64,000 bases of DNA, from the IMG/VR virus record IMGVR_UViG_3300045125_000071, positions 124,001 to 188,000 of that record; one strand, given 5' to 3'. Below, piece by piece: positions 1-48,133 of this stretch. The notes beneath the pieces were generated by a model that did not search any database, was not told the DNA's origin, and worked only from the letters and a program-made list of their open reading frames with translations. Made by a program: the position numbers and the translations under genes. The stretch's first letter is position 1. Each line of letters begins with the position of its first letter.

Positions 1-422
1 TTTGTTTCAGCTGCAACAGCAAATTGTCTACTTTTAGCTTTGTTTTTTTCTATTATTTTTATTATATCATCACCATTCAATACTGTTTTAGAATCCATTA
101 TTTCCTTAACAGCTAGCATTTTTGACGCTTCTTTTGTTTTTGGACCAACAGAAATACCTTTACCTAAAAATCCTGCTCTAATATCTGCATTAATAGCTGA
201 TTTTAATTCTTTTTCTAACAAAGAGAACTCTTTACCTAATGCTGCATTTATAGCTTTTTCAGTTGTTATGAATTCTCTCGCTAACAATGAAATTTTAGCA
301 TCTCTACTTAATGTTTTTAATTCTCTAGCAACTTTACTAATATCAACCTCACTCACCTCAAATTTTGATTCATTGATAAAATCACTAATTGTTTTTTTTG
401 GAATGGTTATATCTTTTTTCAT
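1..422 (-). CDS. hypothetical protein, 5' part (runs off window start)
   Basis: ATG at 422 (MKKDITIPKKTISDFINESKFEVSEVDISKVARELK...), open to the window edge; missing from the ORF track because it has no stop in the window. Confidence 0.7.
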   Translation of the reverse strand, partial: MKKDITIPKKTISDFINESKFEVSEVDISKVARELKTLSRDAKISLLAREFITTEKAINAALGKEFSLLEKELKSAINADIRAGFLGKGISVGPKTKEASKMLAVKEIMDSKTVLNGDDIIKIIEKNKAKSRQFAVAAET

Positions 423-442
423 ATTAAATTTTTTATTTTTTT

Positions 443-1614
443 TTAATCAAATGGGTCTTTACCACCATAATATTGGCGTATATTACTTAAAGTTTCTAAA
501 TTTTTTCGTTGTGTTTTATTTAATCCTGTTTTGTATGTTGCATATGTATCCACACCTTTTTCAAAACCATACAAAACACCACTAGTTGATGCACCAGCTT
601 TTAAAGCTGCTGGTGATTTCTTGCCTAATAATGATTCCAAAGATGATACAAACCTTTTCATTATTGATGAAAACCAGTCTAATGCTTGTGAAATAAAGCT
701 GGCACCTTTAGGAAAAGTTTTTGCCATTGCTGATTTTGCCTGAGTTAAAAATTTAGGAACTTTACTTGCACCAGAAATCATAGATTTTATTAAACTAGCT
801 AATTTAGGATTTTTACTTACTGCTACCTGTGCTTGTACTGGACTCATTTTTTTAGCGGTAATAAAGACGCTCTAGCGTTTTTTGCTAATACGCCAGTTGT
901 GACTAAACCTAAAATATCAGTACCTAAATCAAAAAAATGCCCTAGCATAGAATCATTTTTTCATTTTCTGGCCAATCATTAGAAGTAATCTGATATATAT
1001 CTAATGCGGTTATTATTGCCCATGGTATCCAATGAAATGCTAAACCAACACCCGTGGCAATTAAAATTGCGTCAGCAATCATAACAACTGTGCTATACAT
1101 AGCTTCTTTTAATTTTCTGAAAACCCAACGTACACCCTTTGCTAAGGAAACTAAAATTTCTTTCCACTCACCTTTTGAGATTACAACACCAAATTCTTTT
1201 AATCCTTCCCAACCTTCTATAAACGCATCTTTTACACCCTTCCCAGCATCAGCTAATTTTTCACCAAACCACGTATCTTGAAAAAATTCCATTCTAATAA
1301 TATATTTCTTAGACCATGTAAATTTTGCTTTTCTTCAAATATTGGTAATTTTAAAATATTTTCTTTAATATTTTGATATTCTTTATTATTTTCTAACGAT
1401 ATGTTATTAAATATTGTTTTGAAGATATCAATTGAATCCCATAAGTTACCCAAACTACGTTGTTCTTTTATATCAAATACATCATCTTGTAGAATGAAAT
1501 ATCTACCATCAACGGTTGTACATAATTCAAAAATGTAATTTCTTTTGTTTTTTAAATTATACAATCCCTTAATTCTATTTTTTCGGATTCGTTTAAGTTA
1601 AACGGTGTATACAT
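443..1614 (-). CDS. hypothetical, probably virion-associated protein (~3 homopolymer frameshifts)
   Basis: Track ORFs 1253-1564, 942-1292 and 443-847 join at homopolymer runs; start MYTPFNLNESEKNRIKGLY preceded by a TATTTAT motif. Confidence 0.6.
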
Positions 1615-1644
1615 TTTTCTAGTTTACAATATATAAATATACAA

Positions 1645-2317
1645 TTATAGTAAAGTGTTCCCCTTTCCTCTTTTAAAGATTGTCCAACAACATCTTTCCA
1701 TTTTGTAACAGCAATTTGATTTGCAGGACCTCTTGTAACACCGCTTTCCCATTTTGTTACTTGTGGGTATCCAGTACCACCGCCTTGTGTTGGTGTTGTT
1801 GATGCAGCAGCTGCGGCATCCTGTTCTTTCATTTCTTTTTTATTATTATAATAATTCAATATAAAATCATTTCCATACCCAGTACTAGATATTTCTTCTA
1901 TTGAAACTTCAATTGGTTCAATATTATTTTTTTCTCTTTATAATCTTCTAATTTTTCGGCACCAAAACCCTCAAAATATACTATAGGTTTACCATTAACC
2001 ATTTTAGATGCAATAATTTTACTTATTTTAGACACCCCCCAACCCTCTTCCTGGGATTCTCTATATGCAGCATCTATTGGTTTTTCATTTTTTTCCACCT
2101 TACCACCAGGTAAACCAATTTTCTTATTTTCAGATTTTTCATAGGGTCTAGTTGTTGCAGCAATTTTATTGTTTGGTAATTTAATAACCACAAACGCAGC
2201 AAACGCATTATCCTCCTCTTCTTCAGATAATTCTCTATAACCTTTACCTTCTTCTATAATTAATTTGTCAATTAATCTGCGTATTTGTTCTTCCTTGACA
2301 ACAACTATTTTATTCAT
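1645..2317 (-). CDS. NUDIX hydrolase fused to a C-terminal KWESGVTRGPANQI domain (frameshifted)
   Basis: Nudix box GLPGGKVEKNEKPIDAAYRESQEEG; reading continues across an A-run into ORF 1593-1859. Confidence 0.75.
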
Positions 2318-2682
2318 CTTCGTCATATATTGAATTATCTTTTTTGGCATACATTTTTATGTATTGTCCCGTTTTGCATTTGCTTCGTCTTCAATTTCAT
2401 ACCCAATATCTGGCGGTCTTACTTTTAATCTACCATCTTCCCATTGTTTATGGTGAACAAGTTCATGTGCAAGACTACGCATAACGTCAACTAACGCCCT
2501 ATTTTTACCGTTTATTTTGATTATCTTATTCTCCTTAGTATAATCGTAATTAGCGGTTGTTTTAAGCTCCTTTCTACCATTCTGTATCGAAATAGTTGGT
2601 ATGTTTTCAATTTGTAATTCTTTTTTTACAAATTTAGCAAAATCATTTAACGTATTTTTCTTTTTTCTGATAAAAAACTCAT
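2310..2682 (-). CDS. HExxH zinc metallopeptidase-like protein (frameshifted)
   Basis: SLAHELVHHKQ followed by EIEDEANAKAG. Confidence 0.6.
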
Positions 2683-2693
2683 AATAATAAATA

Positions 2694-2939
2694 TTATAAA
2701 AATTCTTCTTTTGGCGGTTCATTATGTTTATAAAACTCGATTAATAATTCAGAAACAAAATCTTCATCAATATCCTCCATATCTTTTTTGGTTATTATTG
2801 TTGGAGAATTTAATTCAATGTCTCTAAATAATAATTCATCTAACCTATAAGTATTTTCGGCATCACCCATAAAAGAAAATTCAACCTGGAGCGTTTGGGT
2901 TTTATCGTTGTAATAAAAGTTATGTATAATCATATTCAA
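2694..2939 (-). CDS. hypothetical protein
   Basis: 81-aa acidic ORF co-oriented with neighbours. Confidence 0.6.
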   Translation of the reverse strand: MNMIIHNFYYNDKTQTLQVEFSFMGDAENTYRLDELLFRDIELNSPTIITKKDMEDIDEDFVSELLIEFYKHNEPPKEEFL

Positions 2940-3017
2940 GTACTGATAATTATATTCATTTTTATCAAAATTTTATATTATATATGAAATTGATAAAATT
3001 TATTATAATTAATTAAT

Positions 3018-3224
3018 ATGGACTGGTATATTATTGAATATTTGTATCCCGAATCTTATAAATTGTTTATAAAAACAATGTATCCAAATACTGGATTAAT
3101 TAGTTTATCAGTATTAAAAAATTTTGATTTAAAAAAGTTGTACAGTTTTTTTGATAAACAAGAAATTTATCTTATATTAGAATTAAATAACACAAACCAG
3201 TGGAATTATATAATAAAAAAATGA
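3018..3224 (+). CDS. hypothetical protein (probably extends past a frameshift)
   Basis: ORF track; AT-rich leader. Confidence 0.45.
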   Translation: MDWYIIEYLYPESYKLFIKTMYPNTGLISLSVLKNFDLKKLYSFFDKQEIYLILELNNTNQWNYIIKK

Positions 3225-3641
3225 CACTTTTTTAAGTTCAAATTCATTAACCAGAAGTACAAGAGATGAAATTGAATCTGATGGTTTTATGCAATGTTTT
3301 AAATTTTTAGAAGTTGTTATAAATAATAAACAAAAAGTATGAAAGATTATTACACATTTGATTTTTATTTTGATTATTTATTACAAGCAATAAAAACTAT
3401 TACACACAAATAATAATACCGAATTTGAAATTAACACTGTTTATGAGTGGGTATTAATTATTGAAGATAAAACGCTTTTACGTTATAAAAACAGAAACTC
3501 AATAATATCTTATAGTAATGATTTAGAATTATTTATTGAATTAATTGATTATTTAATATCATTATTTGAAAAATCTGAGGAATATGAAAAATGTGAAAGG
3601 CTGCTAAATAGAAAAATTGAATGTAAACTTATTTAATATTT

Positions 3642-3866
3642 TTACTTAACTGTTTGGTAAAAAATATAAGACAACCAAAAACAACCTGAAATTGAATAAA
3701 AAATAATATCTGCACCCCAGTATGAGCCAGTGATTTCCATCATTAATTTGAACAATGCGTCGTAACCAAATGGGAGAAAAAACATCGCTAACATAAGTGA
3801 TATATCTCTGTAGAATTCCAACCTTTTCGCTTTGTCTTTCAAAGATTTTAATTTGTTTATCGCCAT
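3642..3866 (-). CDS. small membrane protein
   Basis: Two hydrophobic segments (ISLMLAMFFLPFG; IIFYSISGCFWLSYIF). Confidence 0.55.
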   Translation of the reverse strand: MAINKLKSLKDKAKRLEFYRDISLMLAMFFLPFGYDALFKLMMEITGSYWGADIIFYSISGCFWLSYIFYQTVK

Positions 3867-3893
3867 CGTCCATATTAAGGTTAATTATGCCGT

Positions 3894-4106
3894 TTATTGT
3901 TCATTAAAAACATTTCTTACATAATGCATGTCTCCATTGTGCTTAACCCAAATCTTACAATTTTCGTGATTACAATTAATATCACTACATAATTTTGTTA
4001 AATGAATATTGTCACAATATGTTTTTGCATCAATTATTTCATCATCAAATTCCTCCTCAATTAAATTCAAAGGACTACCATTATAATATCTTACTTTTCT
4101 TATCAT
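3894..4106 (-). CDS. hypothetical protein
   Basis: 70-aa ORF with Cys/His cluster. Confidence 0.5.
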   Translation of the reverse strand: MIRKVRYYNGSPLNLIEEEFDDEIIDAKTYCDNIHLTKLCSDINCNHENCKIWVKHNGDMHYVRNVFNEQ

Positions 4107-4224
4107 GATTCTTTTCTTTCTTTTTTCGGGTAAAATTCAAACCTGTTATGTTCTGTTGGTGTCGCTAATAAAATACCAGGTTTAATTTTATCTTTTAAAG
4201 TTTCTTGATAAATATAATGTTTTA

Positions 4225-4510
4225 ACTAAAAAATAATAAAAGTATTAGAACACTTGAATTAATTGGATGCAGTTATGATGAATTAATTAAATTCATTGAA
4301 AATAAATTTATTGATAGTATGAATTGGAATAATTACGGTTATTATGGTTGGCATATTGACCACATCAAACCATTATCTTCAGCAAAAAATGAATTTGAAT
4401 TAATTAAATTATTTCATTATACTAATTTACAACCTTTATGGTGGAAAGATAATCTAAGTAAAAATGGTAAATACATTCCTCAACATTCTTTTCTTAATTC
4501 ATTAGAATAA
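4225..4510 (+). pseudogene. HNH homing endonuclease remnant
   Basis: TLELIGCSYDELIKFIENKF-MNWNNYG-WHIDHIKPL-HYTNLQPLW-NLSK HNH motif; no intact N-terminus; antisense to neighbours. Confidence 0.7.
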
Positions 4511-6849
4511 TGGTCAAATCTATTGTGTTCTGTTGGGGTCATAAGTAATATTCCAGGGTATAATTCATTTTTTTTAACAAGTTGATACATAAAACTCATT
4601 AACGTCTGTTCAAATGGTGATTGGAATTTTGTATTTATAAACATTTTTTTATTACCTATTCTACTAACTATTTGTGGCCAATTACAATAGTACACCTCAC
4701 CCGTAGCGTATGGTACATTTTTATATGATAATATTTTATTAAAATTTGTTTTTTGGGGCGTTTGAGTCTAAACCAAATTTTGGTAAATCATAATTATTTG
4801 GCCAAAAAGTTGTTCTAATATTTTGTGGTACATTATACCATGCCCATTGAGTTCCATTATCACCATAAAATTCGGAATAATTTAATTTTAAAAAATCAAA
4901 ATTTTCTATTTGCATAATCTCCAAAGATATTTTATATAAATTATTAATATATCTTCTAAAACCATTTCTACAAATTGAGTCTTTTTCTGGATAAAAAAAC
5001 ATATCATCCTCAAAGAAATAATAATAATCTAAATTTGTTTCATTTTGAAAATGTTCAGCTATAAATTGTCTACCACCAGATATACCTATATTGTCTTTTT
5101 TTATATGTTCAAATCCATATTGTTCACATAATTCTTCATATTTTGAAGTTGTTGATAAATCTGTTGAATTATTAAGCAAATATTTTTTCGGTTTTTCTAT
5201 ATAATTTTTATCATATTCTAACATCGATTCTATCAACACTTCAAATTGTTTTGGACTATTAAATGTTATTACATATAAACCAACATTATTAATGTCTAAA
5301 TTATTTTGAATTTTTATATTTTCAGATTTTTCCCGTTTTACTGTTAAATTATCGTTTTTTAAATTTTCAAAAAAGGTACCTAATAAACCATTATATTCAA
5401 TTTCATAATATTGAATTAATTCTGGGTATTTATATGTCATGATAGTGAATATACTTTCTTCAGTACCCATATAACCTTCATTTAGGCTATCATATAACAA
5501 AGTATAATAAATGTTATTTATTTCACCTATAACATCTTTTGGTCCACCAAATATCCCACCACGAGCAACTTTATTTACTTCAGCATCCGCATAGTTACAA
5601 ATTGCATTATATTCAAAACCGTGAATTTCTGTTTTACCATCATAAGGAAAACAAACAAATGAAAAATCATCAAAATATTTTTCTAATTTTTGTATAACCC
5701 TATCTTGCCAAAAATAACCTTCATGTACAGTATTCGTCAAACCACCGTCAACCCAAATCAAATGTGTTGAATCAAATTTATCCATTATTTTAGCATCATT
5801 CAATAAAAACATTTTAGACATTACAATCGGATTGTACATTTCCAATTTTGCTTGCGTACTATCTTTTAACCATTCAGCTTGATTATACCATTCAGGTTTA
5901 TTTCTAATTTCTTGTATTTTATTAAAAATATCAAAATTATTTTTGAACCAATCTAATTCTTTTATTATTATTTGCGTGTTTTCAAATTTTCTTCTATTTT
6001 CAACAAAATCTTTATATTTTGATTCTATAAAAATAATCATATTATCTTCTGTTTTTAGAAGTTTTTCTAGATTAATTAGATAATGTTCAAAACCTCTATT
6101 CCATCCTTCAGATAATTCATTTCTTTTTATATCCCATATTCCAGTAACTATTGTTACATTTTTTCTTACGTTATTATTTGATTTTTTAAATAATGTTTCA
6201 TGCAAATCGTTTCTTAATCCAACGATATCTTGACCATTAATTTCATAGATATATTTGTTATCCATGAATATTTTTTTAATGTCTTCTTGCTCTTCAATAT
6301 TTAAATTTATCCATTCGAGTCTTATAACCGATGGTTTATATTTTTCTAAATCAATTTGTTTAAATATTTTATAATCATGACCTTCCGCGTCAATTTTAAC
6401 AACATCAAAGTTTTCAATGTTGTGTTTTTTTAACACGGTTTCAAATCTTAAACAATTAACTTGTACTATTTTACCATACTTGTTAACAGTATCCTTATCA
6501 CCTTCACTTCCTAATCCGTTTTTTGGTGGATATACGGCACTCATACCGTAAAAACAACTATGTACAACTCCATTATCTATAACATCCCTATCAATTGTTA
6601 ACATATCTATCGTACCATCATAATCTGATATTGCACAATTTTCAAAAAATTTGAACCGCCTATGTTATTTTTTAATTTTTCAAAAAGATATGGTATTGGT
6701 TCGACATACAAACCAATAAAATTATACATATTTGTATAGCCAATCATCTCATCAAACATGACACCATCCATAGCGCCGATATTGATAACAAAAACATTCT
6801 TTTGTTTCTTTCCTATATAATGAAGAGCCTTATCAAAAAAATTACTCAT
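4480..6849 (-). CDS. multidomain protein: FkbM-type methyltransferase + HtrL/WlaTC-like glycosyltransferase + GT-A-like domain (frameshifted)
   Basis: INIGAMDG / VVKIDAEGHDY (FkbM); TIVTGIWDIKR...MSKMFLLNDA...WVDGG (HtrL-like); YYYFFEDD DxD-like motif; track ORFs 6607-6849, 4739-6604 and 4480-4695 join. Confidence 0.7.
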
Positions 6850-7460
6850 TTAATTTTTTATTTTACAAACCCAAACAATTTTATCAAAAGAATCTTTTTC
6901 AATTGATTCCAAATTATATTGTTCACAAACATCTTTTATATCATCATCTTTTATTTCACACCAATTCCAGATTTTATCATAGTAGTTATCTTCAAAATTT
7001 TGTAAATCACTACAATAATCATGCGCCATTATAATATCACCTGGTTTTAAATATTCAGACAATTGATTGAATTCTTTTACTTTATTTCCACCATCACAAA
7101 TGATTAATGTTTTACCATCATTTTGTATGTATGGAACAATGTAATCTTTTTTATCAAAATATAATCATTACCTTGACCAAATAAATTCTCACTTGAAATT
7201 TCTAAATTCTGCATTTCATTAAGTTTATCGTGAAATGAATTATGGTTTATATCATAAGATTTAATGATAGTGTCATATAAACCCAATTCATTTAAAGTAT
7301 CTCTTAAAAAATGTGTAAATCCGCCAGCACCAGTACCAATTTCTAGAATTCTATTTGGTTTATATTTTTCTAAAAAATACGTAAATACTTGAACGAAATC
7401 TTCATGTTGTTGTAACATTGTTCCTTTATATACTGATATACCAGTAATTGGTTTTTTCAT
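6850..7460 (-). CDS. class I SAM-dependent methyltransferase (CmcI-like; frameshifted)
   Basis: ILEIGTGAGG motif I; YLKPGDIIMAHDY. Confidence 0.7.
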
Positions 7461-7463
7461 ACT

Positions 7464-8307
7464 TTAATTATTTAGTTTTTCAAAAATATTATAAAAATAA
7501 ATTTCATCTTGAAAGTTATATTTTGCCATATCACTATCTTCATGATGCCATGTTGTAAAAAATTGCGGGTTAAAAATTTCCGTGTGCCTATCGTACAATA
7601 ATGTTAATAAATGTTCTTCTCTATCAAGACCACCAAATTGAACCATTTCATTTATAGCATTTTCATAATTTAGTAAAAAAATTTTTAATAATTCAACATC
7701 GCCACCAAATAAACCGCCAATAACATGTGAAGTTATATTTTTTGGGTTGGTCAAATAAAAATTTGGATTAGGTGATGAATCCATAATATGTTTTTCTTGT
7801 GTTGCAACTATAATCACTATTTTATCTAAACTATTCAACCCACTAACTAATTTAGGATTAAATAATGTACAATTAAAATATGAATTAAATCCTACACCAT
7901 CTATATATTTGTTTGGGAATAAACCACCATATGATAAACCGCAATCAATCCAATATATATAATCATAATTTTCATGTAAATGATTTTTCATCCAGATAAA
8001 TTTTCCATGCATCACTTCATTGCACCTATCTGTTTTAACATTATTCATTTTTTCTTGAAAATAATTATGATACGGGTGTTTAAATAAATCATATTCAATA
8101 AATCTTATTAATTGATTTGAATTTTGTGATATAAATTTTTCTTGTAAATTATTTATTTCACTTGGACTGGTATAAATTACAAAATCGGCTTCGGTTTTCA
8201 ATAATGTTTTTAAGGAATTAAAATAATGGTGGTATCTACCAGTTCTACCACCTAATTTCGTGTTATCTAACCCATCATAAAAACAAGTAACAAATAATGT
8301 TTTTCAT
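7464..8307 (-). CDS. HtrL/WlaTC-like glycosyltransferase (frameshift near start)
   Basis: N-terminus LFVTCFYD; YIYWIDCGL; HVIGGLFGG; resembles the middle domain of 4480-6849. Confidence 0.6.
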
Positions 8308-8949
8308 AATATTATTTTTAAAAAATACATGATTAATTGGTTTATCAAAATTATCTTCTGGCCACAACCACCTACATAATAATCGTTTATCGGTTCAACA
8401 GGAAAACTATTAATATATTTTGAGCAATGTATTAATATTGAATCTTCAAAAATTGGTTTTAATTTGGTTCTTAAAAATTGTTGGTCGGAATCGTACCCCC
8501 ATTTATCCCAACCGTCCATTAATTTTTTTATAACAACCTTATCATTTTTTTAATCCCCACATACCACCCATTATATCAAAGTGTGAAATATTGTCTCTAA
8601 TAGAGTGCAATAACATGTCTGATTCTATAAATAAATCAACACATTTCTTTTCTCTATATGATAACCTAGCATCCGCATCCCTAACAATCATGATTTCCAC
8701 ATCGTCATCATCTATAGCTAAAAACCTCCACATCATTTGAAATATATCTTTACGATTTTCCATATTAATCAATTCAACATTATCATAAGTTTCTAAAATT
8801 GATATAGTATTTGATGATACCGAATCGTCATAATATACCCTACAAATCCAATCTGGGTATATTATTTTTGCCAACTCAATATTACAAATCATTCCTTTGG
8901 AATATCTTAAATCAGAACCATAAAGAGAAAATGATATTATTTTTTTCAT
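8304..8949 (-). CDS. putative glycosyltransferase-associated protein (frameshifted)
   Basis: IISFSLYG...YPDWICRVY...MMWRF...RDADARLSYRE motif set typical of glycan clusters; joins ORF 8304-8519. Confidence 0.6.
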
Positions 8950-9896
8950 AATAAATTTTTATGGTATGTGTCAAAAATTTCTAATAACATATTTTCAGAA
9001 TTATATGGGTCTACAGGTTTATGGTGTATATTATTTAATATACCATATGAAATAAAATTACTAATCCAACAATAATTATTAAATAGATATATTTTTTTAC
9101 TAAATGAAAATAAAATAAATTCTATTAGACAATATTCCCAATAATCATTATCGTTATAGTCTCTATTAACTGTTTTTTTATAATCTTCATCTAATAATAT
9201 AAAATTGTTATACATTTTTTTTAATGTATTTTTTATTTCAATATTATTTGAAAAAACTAAAATTTTATTTTCATTTTTTGCAATTTTTTTGATGTGTGTT
9301 AAAGCATCATCAGTAAATTCAATATAACCTTTAAATATATAATCTCTAACCGCAAAAGGTGTTTTATTGTTATTCAAAATATTATCATTAAAATAATCTG
9401 CAATATCATCCAAATCCCTAAAATGCATGATACTAAAACTATCTAATTCATATTTTATTTTTATATTTTTTACTTTTTCAATTATTGAATTTGAAAATTT
9501 TGGGTAATCATCATATTTTTCTATTGTTTGATTACCAAGTCTAGATAAGTTTATATATGGGAAATCTAAATCATCGTTAAAATTAGTTGGAGCAAAAACA
9601 TCATAACAATGCATACCAGTTATCCATTCATTTATTGGAAAAATTAGTTTATAATCACCTAATGATTCACAAGACTGTGCAACATTTGTAATTATAATAT
9701 CATCAAAATAATTGTAATATTTTTTTCAAATAGATTTATAAAATCAATCTCTCTTTTAGAATTAAAAATTAATATTATATTATAATTTTTTCTTTTAATT
9801 GTTTTGATAAAAAATAAATTTCACAAAAATAGGTATAAAAATCTCCAATACCCGAAGTAAAATTTATTTGTATATAAATCAAATTATTGTTCCCAT
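8946..9896 (-). CDS. putative fucosyltransferase-like glycosyltransferase (frameshifted, start approximate)
   Basis: N-terminal FTSGIGD, IMHFR, LIEFILFS...SNF pattern resembling GT-B fucosyltransferases. Confidence 0.4.
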
Positions 9897-10824
9897 TCAT
9901 CCAAACCTAAAAGTTTATATGTTAAATTTATACTACCATTTAGGGATAGATAATCATCATAATATTTCCTGGCGTTTTTTGATATAAAATTTAAAAAATC
10001 AATATCATCTTTAACTTCCAAAAATTTATCGGTAATCATTTTTGCGTGAGATGCATTACCTAATCTATCTATTATTAAATCCGTAGGTTTTTCTATTGAA
10101 ATGTAATGAAAATTTGGAATTAACGGTATTGCCATTTTGTTGATATATTCAAATCTTATGATTGGAACACCTAAACCAAAATTTTCAACATCCCTATAAC
10201 AAAATTCACCTCTCCCTGATATTGATAATGCTACTTTATATTTTATTAAATCTCTAGCATATGCATCAAAATTACCCATAGGAAGACCGCCTTCAAAAAA
10301 TTCACTATTAAAATATGAAAGTATTTTTCTATCTTCTATGGATGTACCTCTAAAATAAAATTTATCTATAAAATTTGATATGTTATTTCTTTCACTATAG
10401 ATTGAATCTATATCGTATAAATTAGATGGAAAATAAATCCATGGTGAATATTTTGATAAATTATCTTGACCAACATGTCTAATCAATTTATTTTCATCAA
10501 ATTGTGAAAAGATAATTTTTTTGCAAAGCGGATTAGGATGGTGATTTAAAATAGCGCCTGTCAAATCGTCAGAAACAGATAAAACAACAAATTCAGAAGT
10601 CTCTTTATTTTCTATAATCATTTCACACTCTAGCATAAATGACTTAGTAATATCATTCAATAATTCAACAGGATAATATGAAATGTTTGCTTTATCGTAA
10701 TAAACATCTTCTATTACATCAAATTTTTGTTTTAAATGTTCTATAAAATTTTTAAAAAAATATTATAATATCTATAATTCCAGGAATGTTCATTTTGGGG
10801 TGTATGTATTATAATTTTAGTCAT
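9884..10824 (-). CDS. putative glycosyltransferase (GT47/GT90-like C-terminus; frameshifted)
   Basis: FYFRGT...YKVALSISGRGEFCYRDVENFGLGVPII. Confidence 0.5.
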
Positions 10825-10833
10825 CATTTATAA

Positions 10834-12080
10834 TTATAAATTACCAATTATTCTCTCACACCAACCCTTAGTACTACTATATGGCCAAACAACCCAATAT
10901 TTCGGTTTTATATCTGTTTGAAATTCTCTCCATACCTTACAATATCCATCTGGGTCATTTTTCATTCTATTTATCTCATTCCTATCCGCATCTTTTCTGA
11001 AGATTGTTTCGTCATTTTCATCATGAAACGCAACAGCCCAAAATTCATAATCATTTTCTGGAACCTTATCATAACCAATATCAATACAATGTTTAAATAT
11101 TTTTAAAAGGAATTTTCAAAATCTTCACCATATAATGGTGGATTTGGTGCTATGTTGTTATCCAACGTATATTTTTGTATTGCACGTTTTTTAAATGAAA
11201 TACCAGCATATCTTTCATAATCTTCCAAAGTTCTTTCTTTTTCCAAAATCATATGGTCCGAAATCAATATCTTTAACTTCACCATCCATTTCGAAAAGTT
11301 TTCTATTCTTTTTATGTGAGATATTGTTTTTTTCAACCCATTTTTATCATCGTCCCATTGCTTTGTTCTACCTTTTCTAGTATACTCATGCCAAACAACG
11401 ACTTTATGTGGGTGAAATAAATCGTAACCCCAGGTATACGCTCTAACAGCAATTGAAATTTCTTCACCATGAAAATAATAATCTGGGTCATGGGGCACTT
11501 CTAAAACAAATTGACCTAGTGTGAATGCAAAATGTGCAGAATAAAATCTCGCTGGAATTGGTTCATTCAATTCTTGATAATTATCAATGGATGCTGGTAA
11601 AAAGAATATTGCGCCTTCTGGTATGAATCTATCAAAATTCATTTTCCAAGGAATCATTATTCTTGATTCTGAGTCATTATCTGGGTCAAATGAAGATACG
11701 TAACCAGTCAATAACGGTTTTTTATGACCTTTATCTTGTAGTTGCTTAATCATGTTTATACATTCCTCATCCCAATTTTCAACAAATCTGTGATGAGAAT
11801 CTATTTGTAGTGTATAGTCTTCACCATTGTAATTCTGTTGTAATGTATTTCTTGCCCAACAGGCACCTTTTGAATCTAAATAGTTAATGTCAACAATTTT
11901 GAACCTACCATCATCTTTAAATTCGTCTAAATTATCCCATTCATCACTCAATGAATGTTGCCAAGCAATAGAAAATACCAAATTTTCAGGGTATTTTGCG
12001 TTTTTTATACAATCTTTAATTGTTGGAATTAATTGCGGGTCTCTATAAGACGCAATTTGAACAAATATTTTATTATTCAT
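10834..12080 (-). CDS. GlcNAc-transferase family (Skp1-type) glycosyltransferase (frameshifted)
   Basis: IFVQIASYRD, LQIDSHHRF, YFHGEEI, HEYTR motifs. Confidence 0.75.
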
Positions 12081-29113: not shown

Positions 29114-29255
29114 TCGGAAGCCCCAGATTCCTCCTCGGTTGGTTTAACAATACATTAGCGATGTATTAACATGATATTAGCAAAAGGTGAGCGTATCTTT
29201 GTGGCTCACCTAAACCACCGCATGAGTCGAGCGGTTCACCAAACGACACCACACC

Positions 29256-37172: not shown

Positions 37173-37610
37173 ATGAGAAACTTCAATGAATTTTATTCGT
37201 ACATTCTGAATCTTATGAAGGATGAAATCTCTATCACGGGAACGTATCAAGGAAAATTGTTTTGTCTGGTTGATGACGCAAATAATATTTGTACTGCGGA
37301 AATCCCCAACAAGAATTTGGATGATATGGGTGATTTGTTTTTGAAAGTCATGCAAACCCAACATCTTATTGATGAGTTTCCCGTTCGACTGCGAAACGAT
37401 GGTATGACACCTTTGGCGTTTGCCCACACGGAATTGTTTTATTCCGAAACATCATCAAGGATTGCTTTCATCAAGATTGCCATAGATGATGATGGTGATA
37501 ATGTTGTTTTGGAACATAAAAAATATGAAATCAAAAACAATGAAATCATTGTGGATGAAAAGGGTAATCTGAAAAAACAAAAAGTGAAACTGGTCGAAAT
37601 CGAAGAATAA
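37173..37610 (+). CDS. hypothetical protein
   Basis: 145-aa ORF with upstream TAAATTG box. Confidence 0.7.
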   Translation: MRNFNEFYSYILNLMKDEISITGTYQGKLFCLVDDANNICTAEIPNKNLDDMGDLFLKVMQTQHLIDEFPVRLRNDGMTPLAFAHTELFYSETSSRIAFIKIAIDDDGDNVVLEHKKYEIKNNEIIVDEKGNLKKQKVKLVEIEE

Positions 37611-38952: not shown

Positions 38953-39043
38953 TTGTTCATGGTGTTTTATGTTTTGCCCCCGTCATACAAATGGCGGGGG
39001 TTTTTTATTGTCGCTACTGGAACTGTTCAGGCCCACCAGTCGG

Positions 39044-39088
39044 GATTTTGTCTAGTTTAAGACAGGTATTACAAAACTAGATAAAATC
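39044..39088. repeat. cassette palindrome 14
   Basis: N15. Confidence 0.95.
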
Positions 39089-39213
39089 TTCCCTGTCGTG
39101 GGCTGGCGTGTTGTAACCTATTTACAATCCAAGTGTTAGGATAATTTTAACAATTAAAAATTGGATAGATTTTGAACATGATTTAGTTTTGTGTCAGAAT
39201 AAAATTAAACCAT

Positions 39214-39944: not shown

Positions 39945-40056
39945 AGTCAGGTGGCGAAACGGTAGACGCACGGAAGGCATTCCGATTCTCCCTTGTTAGG
40001 AGGCATCCAAAAGCAAGGGCATAGCATGAATACAGGTTCGAATCCTGTCCTGACTA
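39945..40056 (+). ncRNA. tRNA-like RNA lacking a canonical anticodon loop
   Basis: Acceptor AGTCAGG/CCTGACT; D-arm GCG-AAACGGTAGA-CGC; T-arm ACAGG-TTCGAAT-CCTGT; CGGAA-GGCA-TTCCG (4-nt loop) plus a long extra arm. Confidence 0.75.
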
Positions 40057-40215: not shown

Positions 40216-40294
40216 AGTCAGGTGGTGTAATGGTAGCACACGGAGAAGAACTCACCAAAAGGTAGAGCCGACACGGAGTATAGGTTCGATTCCT
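40216..40294 (+). ncRNA. 5' part of a second tRNA-like element, interrupted in the T-arm
   Basis: AGTCAGG-TG-GTG-TAATGGTAG-CAC ... ATAGG-TTCGATT-CCT; matching 3' part at 41401-41423. Confidence 0.75.
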
Positions 40295-40323
40295 CGCGCA
40301 GGCCCTCATCAAAACACACGCAA

Positions 40324-40467
40324 ATGAACACGCACACGATTGAGGTATCCATCCCATCTAATGTTGACCTTGAGCATACATTTTATGCGGTGTTGGATGC
40401 GCTTTGCGCTTCCGACAATGTTACACAGGGGAGGTTGAATTGGTTTTACAAACCATTCGAAAACTAA
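40324..40467 (+). CDS. small hypothetical protein (47 aa)
   Basis: MNTHTIEVSIPSNVDLEHTFYAVLDALCASDNVTQGRLNWFYKPFEN after an AAAACACAC leader. Confidence 0.55.
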   Translation: MNTHTIEVSIPSNVDLEHTFYAVLDALCASDNVTQGRLNWFYKPFEN

Positions 40468-40537
40468 ATTTACAAACCATTCGAAAAAAGAAAAGAGAAA
40501 AGTTCGGTTTAGACCTATAATGTGCAATGACCTCCGC

Positions 40538-40577
40538 GCCCTGCAGTGGTTGAGCGGTTCGATTCCGCAGTGGGGCC
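40538..40577 (+). ncRNA. armless tRNA-like minihelix (acceptor stem + T-arm)
   Basis: GCCCTGC/GTGGGGC 7-bp stem, AGTGGTTG linker, GCGG-TTCGATT-CCGC. Confidence 0.5.
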
Positions 40578-40610
40578 TAAACTGCGCTGCACAGGACAAA
40601 GCAGCAACAC

Positions 40611-40711
40611 ATTATGAACGTTTCGGGGCTTTGCGTAGTAGCCCTTAGTATAAACTTAAAATTAACCACGACACTTGATAGGGCTATTACGCAAAACCCT
40701 TGTTATGTGCC
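40611..40711 (+). other. integron attC-like recombination site
   Basis: ...AAC-GTTTC-GGGGCTTTGCGTAGTAGCCCT-N34-AGGGCTATTACGCAAAACCC-TT-GTTATGTGCC: long imperfect stem with unpaired bases ending in a GTT core. Confidence 0.65.
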
Positions 40712-40728
40712 GTTAAATTTTTAAAACG

Positions 40729-41169
40729 ATGTCAAAATTAAAAACAGCTCAAGATTTAATTAAAACAAATAACAGTTCAGTTATGGCTGGGTTCAATATG
40801 TTTATTCACGGACACCCACCTATTACATTTGCAGATGGTTACCACGATGCTTATGACAGAATGCAAGGTTATGAATTTGCTCAAAAAATGGCAAAAGAAG
40901 ATGGTATTGCTTTTACAAAAATATTCAAATGTAAAGAAGGGGATTGCCACCCGTTTCAGTATGGCGGTTTCTTCGTGTGTAATAATTGCGGCAGGAAAGG
41001 TGTAGATAAAGAATGGTGGAAAATTCAAGTTGAAAAAGACGGAAATGAATTTTGTTGTCACGGATTGGATTTTGTCAACTTGCAGGAAAGTTCAAACTAC
41101 GCTTTCGGTAAAACGTTTGAAGAAGCAATTTCTAATTACGAAAAGGTTATGTTAGGGTTGTCCGCTTAA
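40729..41169 (+). CDS. hypothetical Cys/zinc-binding protein in an integron-cassette-like unit
   Basis: C..CG motif; flanked by GTTATGTGCC (40702) and its inverse GGCACATAAC (41171). Confidence 0.75.
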   Translation: MSKLKTAQDLIKTNNSSVMAGFNMFIHGHPPITFADGYHDAYDRMQGYEFAQKMAKEDGIAFTKIFKCKEGDCHPFQYGGFFVCNNCGRKGVDKEWWKIQVEKDGNEFCCHGLDFVNLQESSNYAFGKTFEEAISNYEKVMLGLSA

Positions 41170-41369
41170 TGGCACATAACACTCAAATATTCGCATTCGA
41201 GACGTGGAGCAATGGAGGAATCCAAACGTCAGCATTTTATGAGGGGGATGAAGCAATGAATTTCATTGCTCGCCACGAGCAAAGTGGCACATTCGCTACA
41301 TTGCACGTCTTCAAAAATGAGAAAGAGGCCCTACAGGCTTACGAAGATTTTCGTAGCGAGGGGAACTGA
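41169..41369 (+). CDS. hypothetical protein
   Basis: 66 aa, coupled start overlapping the inverse core site. Confidence 0.55.
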   Translation: MAHNTQIFAFETWSNGGIQTSAFYEGDEAMNFIARHEQSGTFATLHVFKNEKEALQAYEDFRSEGN

Positions 41370-41510
41370 CCCCTCCCCCCGACCTGCAATGGTTTCAGCG
41401 AGGTTCGATTCCTATCTTGGCTACTCGTTCCGTCTAATCAACGGATAATATGCCCCAACCGAAAGGTTGGGGTTTTTTGTTTCTGGCGCTTCCTGCTGTT
41501 CTTCTGGAAA

Positions 41511-41550
41511 GATTTTGTCTAGTTTTGAAATGGTAAAACTAGACGAAATC
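41511..41550. repeat. cassette palindrome 15
   Basis: N10. Confidence 0.95.
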
Positions 41551-41677
41551 CAACAGGTACCAGCCAGGCGACGGGCTTGGGCAACCTGTTAACGGGCTTT
41601 AACATACAATTAACAACAATTATTTTGATAGCGATTATACGCAACATATCTTTGCATAAACAATTAAATCATAAGCC

Positions 41678-41986: not shown

Positions 41987-42075
41987 CCATTCGCCATCGA
42001 ACGAGCAAACCCCGACCGAAAGGTTGGGGTTTTTTGTTTAACCCCTTCCGACGCTCAGGTAAACAAAACCGTTCG

Positions 42076-42117
42076 GATTTTGTCTAGTTTTGAATTGTTT
42101 TTAAACTAGACAAAATC
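42076..42117. repeat. cassette palindrome 16
   Basis: Consensus arms, N12. Confidence 0.95.
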
Positions 42118-42241
42118 TTGACCGTCGAGGCCAGGCCGATTGCAATCTATTTGCAATCCAAGTGTTAGGATAATTTTAACAGTTTTTATTTGGTGAACAT
42201 ATAATACCGTTATACTTTTGCTGAAACAAAACACATACGCC

Positions 42242-43189: not shown

Positions 43190-43271
43190 AACCACACGCC
43201 CTCGAAGAAGCCCCGACCGAAAGGTTGGGGTTTTTTATTGTCTACTGGCGGAACGGCGCTACCGACGGTGA

Positions 43272-43311
43272 GATTTTGTCTAGTTTTGGAATGATAAAAC
43301 TAGACAAAATC
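43272..43311. repeat. cassette palindrome 17
   Basis: Consensus arms, N10. Confidence 0.95.
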
Positions 43312-43409
43312 CAGCCAGCGGGCGAGCTGGGAGCGTGTTGTGAAAACTTTAACATTTCAAATTTGCACATAACCAATATGCAAAGTATTTTTGCTGAAAC
43401 TTAAATCAC

Positions 43410-46938: not shown

Positions 46939-47196
46939 ATGGAAAAGAAAACCAAGCACACCCTTTTGAAGGGAGAAGGCATCAACCAACACACCTTGTA
47001 TGGTGATTTCAAGGTTGAAGAGAAGGAATCGTTCAGCCGTCTGGTCGTAACCAAAAACAGCGTTCTGCGACATGAAACACCCACAGGCGAGTTCGCTGAA
47101 CACAAGCCCCTTTCGGTGGACAAAGGAAAGTGGAGCATGGGAAGGCAGGTCGAGTACAATCCCTTTGAAAACAGAATTAGTGCAGTATTTGATTAA
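46939..47196 (+). CDS. hypothetical protein of the type found beside DUF6745 genes
   Basis: L..GE...H.L...L.HE...EH..L....G.W..GRQ.EY.P......V.D. Confidence 0.7.
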   Translation: MEKKTKHTLLKGEGINQHTLYGDFKVEEKESFSRLVVTKNSVLRHETPTGEFAEHKPLSVDKGKWSMGRQVEYNPFENRISAVFD

Positions 47197-48133
47197 TGTC
47201 AAATTTTGCGTAACATTCATACCTACCATTAAATTCTTTTTTTGGTAGGTATGAATTATTCTTATTGTTGTTTTTTATCGTTACTTCAATTTCACTAATA
47301 TATTTAGCATCGCCATTAATAATTTTTAATATTTCAAAATTGTACGGCATTTTATTTTTCCCCCTAAATCTCTGTGAAATTGAATTGAAAGTTTTACCTA
47401 CTTTGAAAAATCTCTCATCATTATCCCAACATTCTAATATGTATAATTTGAATGAATCAAATTTATTTGATTTTAGACCTTTCTGTTCCCATAATCGGTA
47501 ACTCCAAACACCATAATTCATACCACATTTTTTACAACCTTTTCCATTCAAATGATTATTAGGTCGTTGGTTAAATTCCCCATGAACAGAACAAATTATT
47601 TTAACATCAGTTTTTGTATTTACATATTTTGATAATGAATAATCGTAGGTATTACCATGAACACTAATTGCTTTATCTACAAAATCTTGTGTTGTCAATT
47701 TCCCTGTTTTTCCACATTTTGGGCAACCATATCCATTTAGATGGTCGTTAGGTCGTTGGTTAAATTCCCCATGAATATGACATAATATTGTGACTTTTGT
47801 TGTTGAATTAATTATAACACATTTTGAGTAATCATATTTATCACCATGAACTTTTTTAGCTTTTTCAATAAAAATATCAGAGTATTTCGGTTTGATAGAT
47901 TTTTTTACTATTTCTTTCTTAATTTTCTCTTTTACCTTTCTTTTACTTTTATTGTATTGTTTCAATTTTTCTTTTCTTTCTGGTGATAGATTTTTATAAT
48001 AATTTTTATCATATTCCAATCTCTGTTTTTTTATTTTCTCTATATTGTTTTTCTTGTACTCCCTGGCTCTTGCCTTATATCTTTCTCTTTGTTCTTCCGT
48101 TAAGTCTAACCATTTCATATTGCTATTTATCAA
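47177..48133 (-). mobile_element. free-standing homing endonuclease (DUF723 repeats + GIY-YIG-like C-terminus)
   Basis: Two F..KA..VHG..YDYS...C..HG.F.QRPN.HL.G.GC..C repeats; LYIL...FFKVGKT; AT-rich and antisense to the array. Confidence 0.8.

Follow-up and report, generated by a model that had tools for sequence, protein, structure and literature searches.

Integron gene cassettes carry one promoter-poor ORF per unit and an attC site, an imperfect palindrome of about 60-140 nt that folds as a single strand, with one strand favoured, and displays conserved AAC (R'') and GTT (R') triplets whose adjoining bases are variable but complementary between the two ends of a cassette, giving a perfect R box in the circle. 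In the classical layout attC lies 3' of its ORF and the crossover is at G|TT on the 3' side of the site. A complete integron has an intI gene with attI and Pc next to a head-to-tail array, while at least two attC sites lying close together without an integrase define a CALIN. Integrons, attC sites and CALINs were reported in phages by Qi et al. 2023 (PMC9892861), including the virulent Polaribacter phage P12002L whose CALIN encodes two methylases, with the remark that phage-borne cassettes often encode orphan methylases. P12002L_attC1 was predicted by HattCI only and was the one site that gave no verified IntI1 recombination, whereas attC2 did recombine. Other systems bear some resemblance. 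Xer-dependent elements comprise the integration of a folded single-stranded attP of the CTX-phi type, in which the folded site mimics an arm/6-nt centre/arm target, and the pdif modules of Acinetobacter plasmids, flanked by inverted recombinase-binding boxes in 28-bp duplex sites, the enzyme being supplied by the host. PeSL mobile regulatory cassettes of T4-type phages, a looser analogue, are composites of an early promoter and a terminator stem-loop that flank small accessory ORFs on both sides in plastic regions of large phages and mediate gene shuffling through homology (PMC2839356, PMC4122927). IS200/IS605 and REP/RAYT elements transpose as single strands guided by subterminal hairpins present at both ends, without terminal inverted boxes.

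The window, the whole stretch of 64,000 nucleotides analysed here, covers bases 124001-188000 of a 251,358-bp virus record with 31% G+C that IMG/VR lists as linear and CheckV estimates as about 75% complete; it looks like a jumbo phage. Its repeated promoter-like boxes read TTG...TAtaTTTG, which fits the Bacteroidota promoter type. Part of the window is built of small operons separated by a repeated module of terminator, palindrome and promoter, and one of these operons contains the gene of interest (Table 1). A sequence-only reading had noticed here a long imperfect hairpin ending in the box GTTATGTGCC, an ATG 18 nt later and the exact inverse box GGCACATAAC right after the stop of a 146-aa ORF, and had proposed an integron-type gene cassette with a truncated distal attC and a degenerate upstream inverse core (ATGAAC), captured from a host or phage integron/CALIN pool. 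Every feature of this observation was found in place. The interpretation holds only in part, as detailed below.

Table 1. Positions in the window of the cassette, its parts and neighbouring features.
Feature	Positions	Strand	Description
Region of small operons	28.5-57 kb		Operons separated by the terminator, palindrome and promoter module
Module upstream of the operon	about 38976-39120		
Left junction	40610-40619	+	Target-side sequence CATTATGAAC; crossover inferred within or next to AA|C
Shared AAC	40617-40619	+	Common to target and cassette
Cassette	40617-41180	+	560-base unit
attC-like hairpin site, type W	40617-40713	+	AAC, 5-6 nt spacer (GTTTC/G), GGG, C.A mismatch, stem, loop, CCC, TT, box R'
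Stem	40630-40645 with 40680-40695	+	Perfect, 16 bp, extended by GGG/CCC across one C.A mismatch
Loop	40646-40679	+	34 nt
Covariance model match	40610-40711	+	60.6 bits, E 5e-11
GTT triplet	40702-40704	+	Start of box R'
10-nt box	40702-40711	+	GTTATGTGCC
Box R'	40702-40713	+	GTTATGTGCCGT
Leader	40714-40728	+	Short and cargo-specific
Cargo gene	40729-41169	+	146-aa Cys-rich protein; ATG at 40729, stop TAA at 41167-41169
Right end box R''	41169-41180	+	ATGGCACATAAC, complement of R'
10-nt inverse box	41171-41180	+	GGCACATAAC
Right AAC	41178-41180	+	Crossover inferred within or next to AA|C
Resident ORF	41169-41369	+	66 aa
Terminator of the operon	41452-41481		

The + strand of the hairpin folds at -36.2 kcal/mol with z = -3.6 as RNA, while the - strand is weaker with z = -2.2 as DNA. 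Pairing between the two boxes is in fact 12 bp, ATGGCACATAAC with GTTATGTGCCGT, including one T.G pair. Both 10-mers occur only once in the whole record. The 10-bp inverted repeat by itself is not beyond chance, since about 200 exact 10-mer inverted pairs at 100-1000 nt spacing are expected in this AT-rich window and the 1-mismatch count is 4 against 2.6 expected. Its significance comes from comparison with other sequences.

The 146-aa protein belongs to a highly conserved phage family with 193 homologs, mostly metagenomic, that are 61-91% identical among the 120 listed; the named ones come from Leptospira phage LE3, Pedobacter and Terrimonas, the nearest named relatives being those from Pedobacter and Terrimonas. 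Many relatives sit in ordinary tightly packed phage or prophage gene rows without any hairpin, as in phage LE3 and a Pedobacter prophage. The closest ones keep the flanking boxes and more distant ones keep them with compensatory changes: the window and L008, L009 and L010 (L numbers designate the sequences compared with the window) have GTTATGTGCC/GGCACATAAC, L007 has GTTAGCTGCC/GGCAGCTAAC and L015 has GTTAGGGCAA/TTGCCCTAAC. Among near-identical copies, homology to the window ends exactly after GGCACATAAC, with a different continuation in each. Homologs of the ORF do occur in cassette arrays, their absence from such arrays, together with the lack of an attC model hit, having been set beforehand as a ground for rejecting the cassette reading; an example is L018, with 6 hairpins in about 5 kb including a copy of the 146-aa gene.

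The 5' arm of the commoner hairpin type (GCTTTGCGWWGGCAGGG) matches 81 IMG/VR contigs exactly, and about 50 of these carry the full element, composed of AAC, a spacer, a stem of about 19 bp, a loop of 71-74 nt, the return stem, a spacer and GTTR. Among hairpins with enough sequence downstream, 26 of 33 have a perfect 10/10 reverse complement of the 10-mer following the hairpin, lying 260-2950 nt further on, against none of 37 upstream controls. The stretch between the boxes holds one ORF, or two in a few cassettes, always on the same strand as here, which starts about 26-58 nt after GTT in most cassettes and ends at or inside the end box, so that the TAA of ...TAAC often serves as the stop codon. 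A covariance model built on 37 sites finds 368 matches in 87 sources, including arrays of co-oriented sites such as 13 in 7.5 kb in L062, 9 in 6.5 kb in L076, 10 in L045 and the 6 of L018. It finds exactly one site in the window, and a separate scan finds one cassette and no other copy in the whole record, which is therefore not a CALIN by definition, although L018, L062 and L076 satisfy that criterion. Of ten cargo proteins scanned, six are DNA methyltransferases (one N6_N4_Mtase, two MethyltransfD12, one MT-A70 and two C-5 methylases), one is DUF4417 and three gave no family match.

Several lines of comparison show which hairpin belongs to which gene. Hairpin type W has its own stem sequence and is near-identical in L031, L042, L068, L078, L084 and L090, and occurs partly in L008 and L010. 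It is always followed by GTTATGTGCCGT, with the cargo ending in ATGGCACATAAC, but it is preceded by seven different sequences and homology among copies starts at the AAC. This shell encloses seven different cargos (63, 68, 181, 105, 84, 76 or 146 aa), the copies diverging from the leader on, and the 12 nt of the end box are invariant in ten cassettes with seven different cargos while the sequence after the AAC is unrelated in each. Conversely, the 146-aa gene is followed after its end box by at least six different sequences, some being hairpins of other types and some plain phage DNA. L007, L077 and L158 share hairpin and ORF variant but have three different upstream flanks, and loop identity is 0.89 for the same cargo with a different upstream flank against 0.70 background. 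Independent contigs of soil, wastewater and other metagenomes match the window only from 40617 to 41180, with at least 5 different loose ends before 40617, loose ends behind 41180 and further breaks at 40714/40720 where other cargos begin. The unit thus consists of C, hairpin, box R', ORF and box R'' up to ...AA, with recombination joints at the AAC on the 5' side of each hairpin. The upstream hairpin is the cassette's own site and not the attC of a previous cassette, there is no truncated distal attC because GGCACATAAC is simply the cassette end, and the ATGAAC taken for a degenerate inverse core is target DNA.

In the alignment of 37 sites AAC and GTT are invariant in all 37, 98.8% of cells are paired, six pairs show changes on both sides and no shuffle reaches the observed values. 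Three pairs are G.T in 36 of 36-37 sequences on the + strand and would be A.C mismatches on the other strand; the same sites score 130-150 bits on the + strand and 40-50 bits on the - strand, a difference of about 90 bits, leading us to infer that the + strand, which is also the sense strand of the cargo, is the one that folds. The unpaired spacer has 5-6 nt on the 5' arm, where the crossover maps, and 2-3 nt on the 3' arm; in classical attC bottom strands the extra bases lie on the arm that is not cut. The larger loops carry three repeats of about 19 nt of the type TAC-AAATGTT-AA, which hairpin W lacks, so they are not essential.

We searched for a recombinase without success. Tyrosine recombinases (PF00589, including intI) are absent from the window, where the sequence-only reading had noted the lack of intI, from the rest of the record and from five other records; the family is present in only 2 of 32 array-bearing virus records and in 1 of the 11 that are at least 90% complete. 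No serine recombinase (PF00239) and no Y1 transposase (PF01797) was found in the five records tested, which include isolate phage P12002L. A scan of bacterial genomes with a 17-mer returned at least 120 loci, mostly by chance, and only 7 of 120 held a genuine hairpin; these include Flavobacterium, Chitinophagaceae and Sediminibacterium MAGs and one Woesearchaeota-labelled MAG contig, all with single sites and no chromosomal array. In five bacterial genomes holding a hairpin, the integron-integrase model TIGR02249 gave only split Xer-like matches, all far below its cut-off.

We favour, with reasonably good confidence, the hypothesis that positions 40617-41180 are one copy of a mobile gene cassette composed of a folded-hairpin recombination site, one cargo ORF and a terminal box that is the reverse complement of the box next to the hairpin. 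In a circular form the end box ...ATGGCACATAA would be joined to CGTTTCGGGG of the hairpin, so that the two boxes would flank the hairpin and extend its stem into a perfect 12-bp R box, following the logic of an integron attC site. Read 5' to 3', this site would present an 11-12 nt arm (ATGGCACATAA), about 6 unpaired bases (CGTTTC) and a second paired arm (GGGGCTTTGCG...). The cassette probably moves as a circle by site-specific recombination at the conserved AAC, with an inferred cut after ...ATAA at the border of arm and spacer, which is the geometry used by IntI at attC and by XerC at dif. The enzyme would have to act in trans, from the host or an unrecognised phage gene. The comparisons establish the boundaries, the shell with variable cargo, the covariation of boxes and stem, the arrays, the methylase-rich cargo and the lack of a detectable recombinase in cis, whereas the circular intermediate, the single-strand substrate, the enzyme class and the state before insertion are inferred. 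Left of the AAC the window reads ...CATT ATG AAC and right of the end box ACT CAA ATA TTC...; joining 40619 to 41181 restores ATG AAC ACT CAA in frame with the resident ORF, whose first codons (ATG GCA CAT AA) now come from the cassette end. The simplest reading is an insertion at an AAC directly behind the start codon of this small gene, which stays translatable and is now coupled to the stop of the cargo (TAATG). This history rests on sequence reading alone, since the 66-aa ORF has no homolog and no empty site was found, neither with a 24-nt exact pattern in IMG/VR nor in reads, the one aquatic metatranscriptome containing the phage flanks covering them only 2-3 fold, too thinly to judge. 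In this view the element works like an integron cassette and shares with integron cassettes and CALINs the single promoter-poor ORF per unit, the imperfect palindrome of about 60-140 nt that folds as a single strand, the complementary AAC/GTT boxes, the strand asymmetry, the head-to-tail arrays of its relatives, the methylase cargo in phages and the absence of a nearby integrase. It differs in a mirrored geometry, the site being 5' of its ORF, the crossover on the 5' side of the site and the ORF on the folding strand, as well as in the 12-bp R box, in what appears to be a longer spacer on the cut arm and, in most relatives, in loops of 71-74 nt with three repeats. Membership in the integron system proper, meaning an IntI-dependent attC, could not be shown, and the position of site relative to ORF and crossover does not fit it.

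In phage P12002L, small hairpins lie in front of the methylase genes with the same AAC-hairpin-GTT architecture and a 3' box complementary to the far end of the gene, for example GTTAGGCAC ... GTGCCTAAC. P12002L_attC1, the most similar published element, is one of these hairpins, while attC2 is the sequence just after an end box. The general idea of attC-like sites with methylase cassettes in lytic phages is thus published, but we found no description in the searchable literature of this large hairpin family, its mirrored geometry, its shell with many cargos or its arrays in well over 50 viral contigs. As in Xer-dependent elements, a folded single-strand site would mimic an arm/6-nt centre/arm target and the inferred cut after ...CATAA resembles XerC cleavage at dif, although no similarity of the second arm to a known XerD arm was shown, and pdif sites are not hairpins. 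It is possible, though tentative, that these hairpin-first cassettes form a phage-borne system distinct from classical integrons, a shared bank of anti-restriction and other accessory genes for phages that, judging from relatives, infect Bacteroidota, exchanged as small circles through a mirrored attC-like site by a host Xer-type or unrecognised recombinase, with no integrase or attI platform in the phage. Phage genomes are mosaics, but few precise mechanisms are known for how single accessory genes hop between unrelated phages, and this family provides a base-exact, testable unit of site, boxes and cargo that preferentially carries DNA methyltransferases, which are anti-restriction genes. It extends the 2023 report by its size and coherence and by its mirrored geometry with no integrase in sight, raising the question of which enzyme moves it, and the many cargos inside one identical shell also bear on how new cassettes are made, an old question in integron biology.

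Among alternative explanations, a non-autonomous transposon bounded by the 12-bp terminal inverted repeats GTTATGTGCCGT/ATGGCACATAAC with a subterminal hairpin, moved in trans by an unrecognised transposase with AAC as a 3-bp target duplication, would give the same junctions and is compatible with the constant shell, the AAC at both ends and the lack of a site-specific recombinase in cis. We consider it unlikely because the three central bases of the boxes vary freely between cassette types yet stay complementary, which fits a requirement for pairing rather than for protein recognition of two ends, because the hairpin stands next to one box only, because neighbouring units in arrays share a single AAC head to tail, and because no transposase was seen in the records tested. 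An IS200/IS605-type element, with which the locus shares a hairpin on one strand and strand-specific features, does not fit either, the hairpin being at one end only, inverted boxes being present and no Y1 transposase being found.

Still less likely is a regulatory stem-loop of the PeSL kind with shuffling by homologous recombination only. The hairpins are conserved repeats of about 100-140 nt in front of small accessory genes, the larger loops carry internal repeats and PeSL-mediated shuffling is documented, but singletons such as this one have no second repeat at the right end to recombine with and yet end to the base at the box, there is no T-run after the stem, and the perfect complementarity between the box and the far end of the cargo is not predicted by homology-driven exchange. 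A purely RNA-level feature, in which a 5'-UTR hairpin and pairing between the ends of each cistron serve mRNA stability, processing or translation, could account for the folding of the sense strand, the three conserved G.U-type pairs, boxes flanking each ORF and the presence of hairpin W in metatranscriptome contigs. This is also very unlikely as a full account since it does not explain why the same unit sits in many unrelated contexts with base-exact breaks; RNA libraries may also contain DNA, and an RNA role could coexist with mobility. A chance inverted repeat next to an ordinary intergenic hairpin, although 10-bp inverted pairs are common in the window, is refuted by the comparative evidence.

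The cargo protein is modelled confidently by AlphaFold2 (pLDDT 88), and its only recurrent structural match is to the N-terminal domain of HicB antitoxins over residues 99-146, the predicted fold of the C-terminal approximately 48 residues. Several matches have probability about 1.0 and rmsd of 1.5-3 Å over 44-49 residues, but E-values are 0.009 or weaker. Conserved Cys and His residues suggest a zinc site. Pfam, PHROGs and a PDB profile search gave no hit, Foldseek against PDB gave nothing apart from the HicB-N-like match, and an Atlas lead to Lar restriction alleviation with a score of 0.75 was not supported by Pfam. Given the company it keeps in these cassettes, an anti-defence role is a reasonable guess and nothing more; for annotation, cargo of undetermined function in this family, such as this protein, becomes a candidate anti-defence gene.

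Rfam, which holds no attC family, gave no meaningful hit to the region in gathering and E-value scans. ARAGORN at low stringency proposed a tRNA with a 1120-nt intron spanning the cassette, which we rejected because the flanking tRNA-like pieces at 40216-40300, about 40540-40575 and about 41383-41425 are degenerate and do not fold, and because the cassette ends are explained to the base by the family comparison. Base composition does not set the cassette apart from its surroundings. A 9/10 match, TGCACATAAC at 43364, lies in a standard promoter module and is at chance level.

Sixteen or so tRNA-like genes form a family whose main cluster lies outside the window, with one intact member, one degenerate member and two further pieces inside it (see table). 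All share the same acceptor stem (AGTCAGG/CCTGACT), D arm and T arm, whereas the anticodon arm is replaced by variable inserts of 17-57 nt or more, giving total lengths of 77-147 nt. The Rfam tRNA model hits them above its gathering score with the insert in place of the anticodon arm, while ARAGORN misses most of them or reports 2- or 4-nt anticodons. The 3' module occurs in more than 120 IMG/VR contigs, often in phage tRNA clusters. They could act as an RNA scaffold or as a decoy, or provide a processing signal between small ORFs.

The region 28500-57000 of the window carries more than 15 copies of a repeated intergenic module composed of an intrinsic terminator (CCCCGACCGAAAGGTTGGGGTTTTTT type), a palindrome GATTTTGTCTAGTTTT ... 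AAAACTAGACAAAATC, and a promoter-like TTG...GTATATTTGC box. The module resembles the promoter-terminator cassettes of T4-type phages and may be an operator for a phage regulator. A direct repeat, ACAAACCATTCGAAAA, occurs twice, 24 nt apart, at the end of and just after the 47-aa ORF, and is found only here in the genome.

Loci of the hairpin cassette family in other contigs and phages gave additional information on cassette organization. In L007, a locus with a homolog of the 146-aa cargo gene, a 31-nt "empty cassette" (GTTAGAAAA, 13 nt, TTTTCTAAC) together with its own different hairpin is present on both sides of the 146-aa cassette. It looks like a cassette shell without cargo, duplicated. 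In Polaribacter phage P12002L (L221), both methylase cassette rows end in the same sequence of about 65 nt, directly after an end box. This is the published attC2, which IntI1 recombined, and it may be the entry site of the array. Many cargo ORFs, as seen at the cassette ends in the family loci L068, L090, L020, L064 and L076, run into the end box and use the TAA of ...TAAC as their stop codon, so that their products end in NGT or NGI. The box thus doubles as coding sequence and terminator of translation.

Coordinates of the tRNA-like genes, repeats and other features observed in the window and in related loci
Feature	Sequence	Position
tRNA-like gene, intact	window	39945-40056
tRNA-like gene, degenerate	window	40216-40300
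tRNA-like piece	window	about 40540-40575
tRNA-like piece	window	about 41383-41425
Main cluster of tRNA-like genes	genome, outside the window (locus L344, about 300-5900)	101.8-107.4 kb
Region with the repeated intergenic module	window	28500-57000
Intergenic module, example copies	window	41445-41552, 42002-42125, 43203-43313
"Empty cassette" with its hairpin, two copies	L007	about 1010-1062, about 1715-1765
Shared end of the two methylase cassette rows (attC2)	L221 (phage P12002L)	about 29150-29235, about 37185-37270
Direct repeat at the 47-aa ORF	window	40448-40487
Two 98-nt copies	window	47523-47809
ORF containing the 98-nt copies (reverse strand)	window	47177-48133
Region with sugar and LPS-type enzymes	window	4739-12080

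Elsewhere in the window, the two 98-nt copies, which are 78% identical and 189 nt apart, lie inside a reverse-strand ORF with a treble-clef zinc-finger match (DUF4379). This arrangement looks like an internal domain duplication. The phage also codes for sugar and LPS-type enzymes, namely an FkbM methyltransferase fused to an HtrL_YibB domain, which is 44% identical to proteins of Xanthomonas and Stenotrophomonas jumbo phages, and a GlcNAc-type glycosyltransferase.
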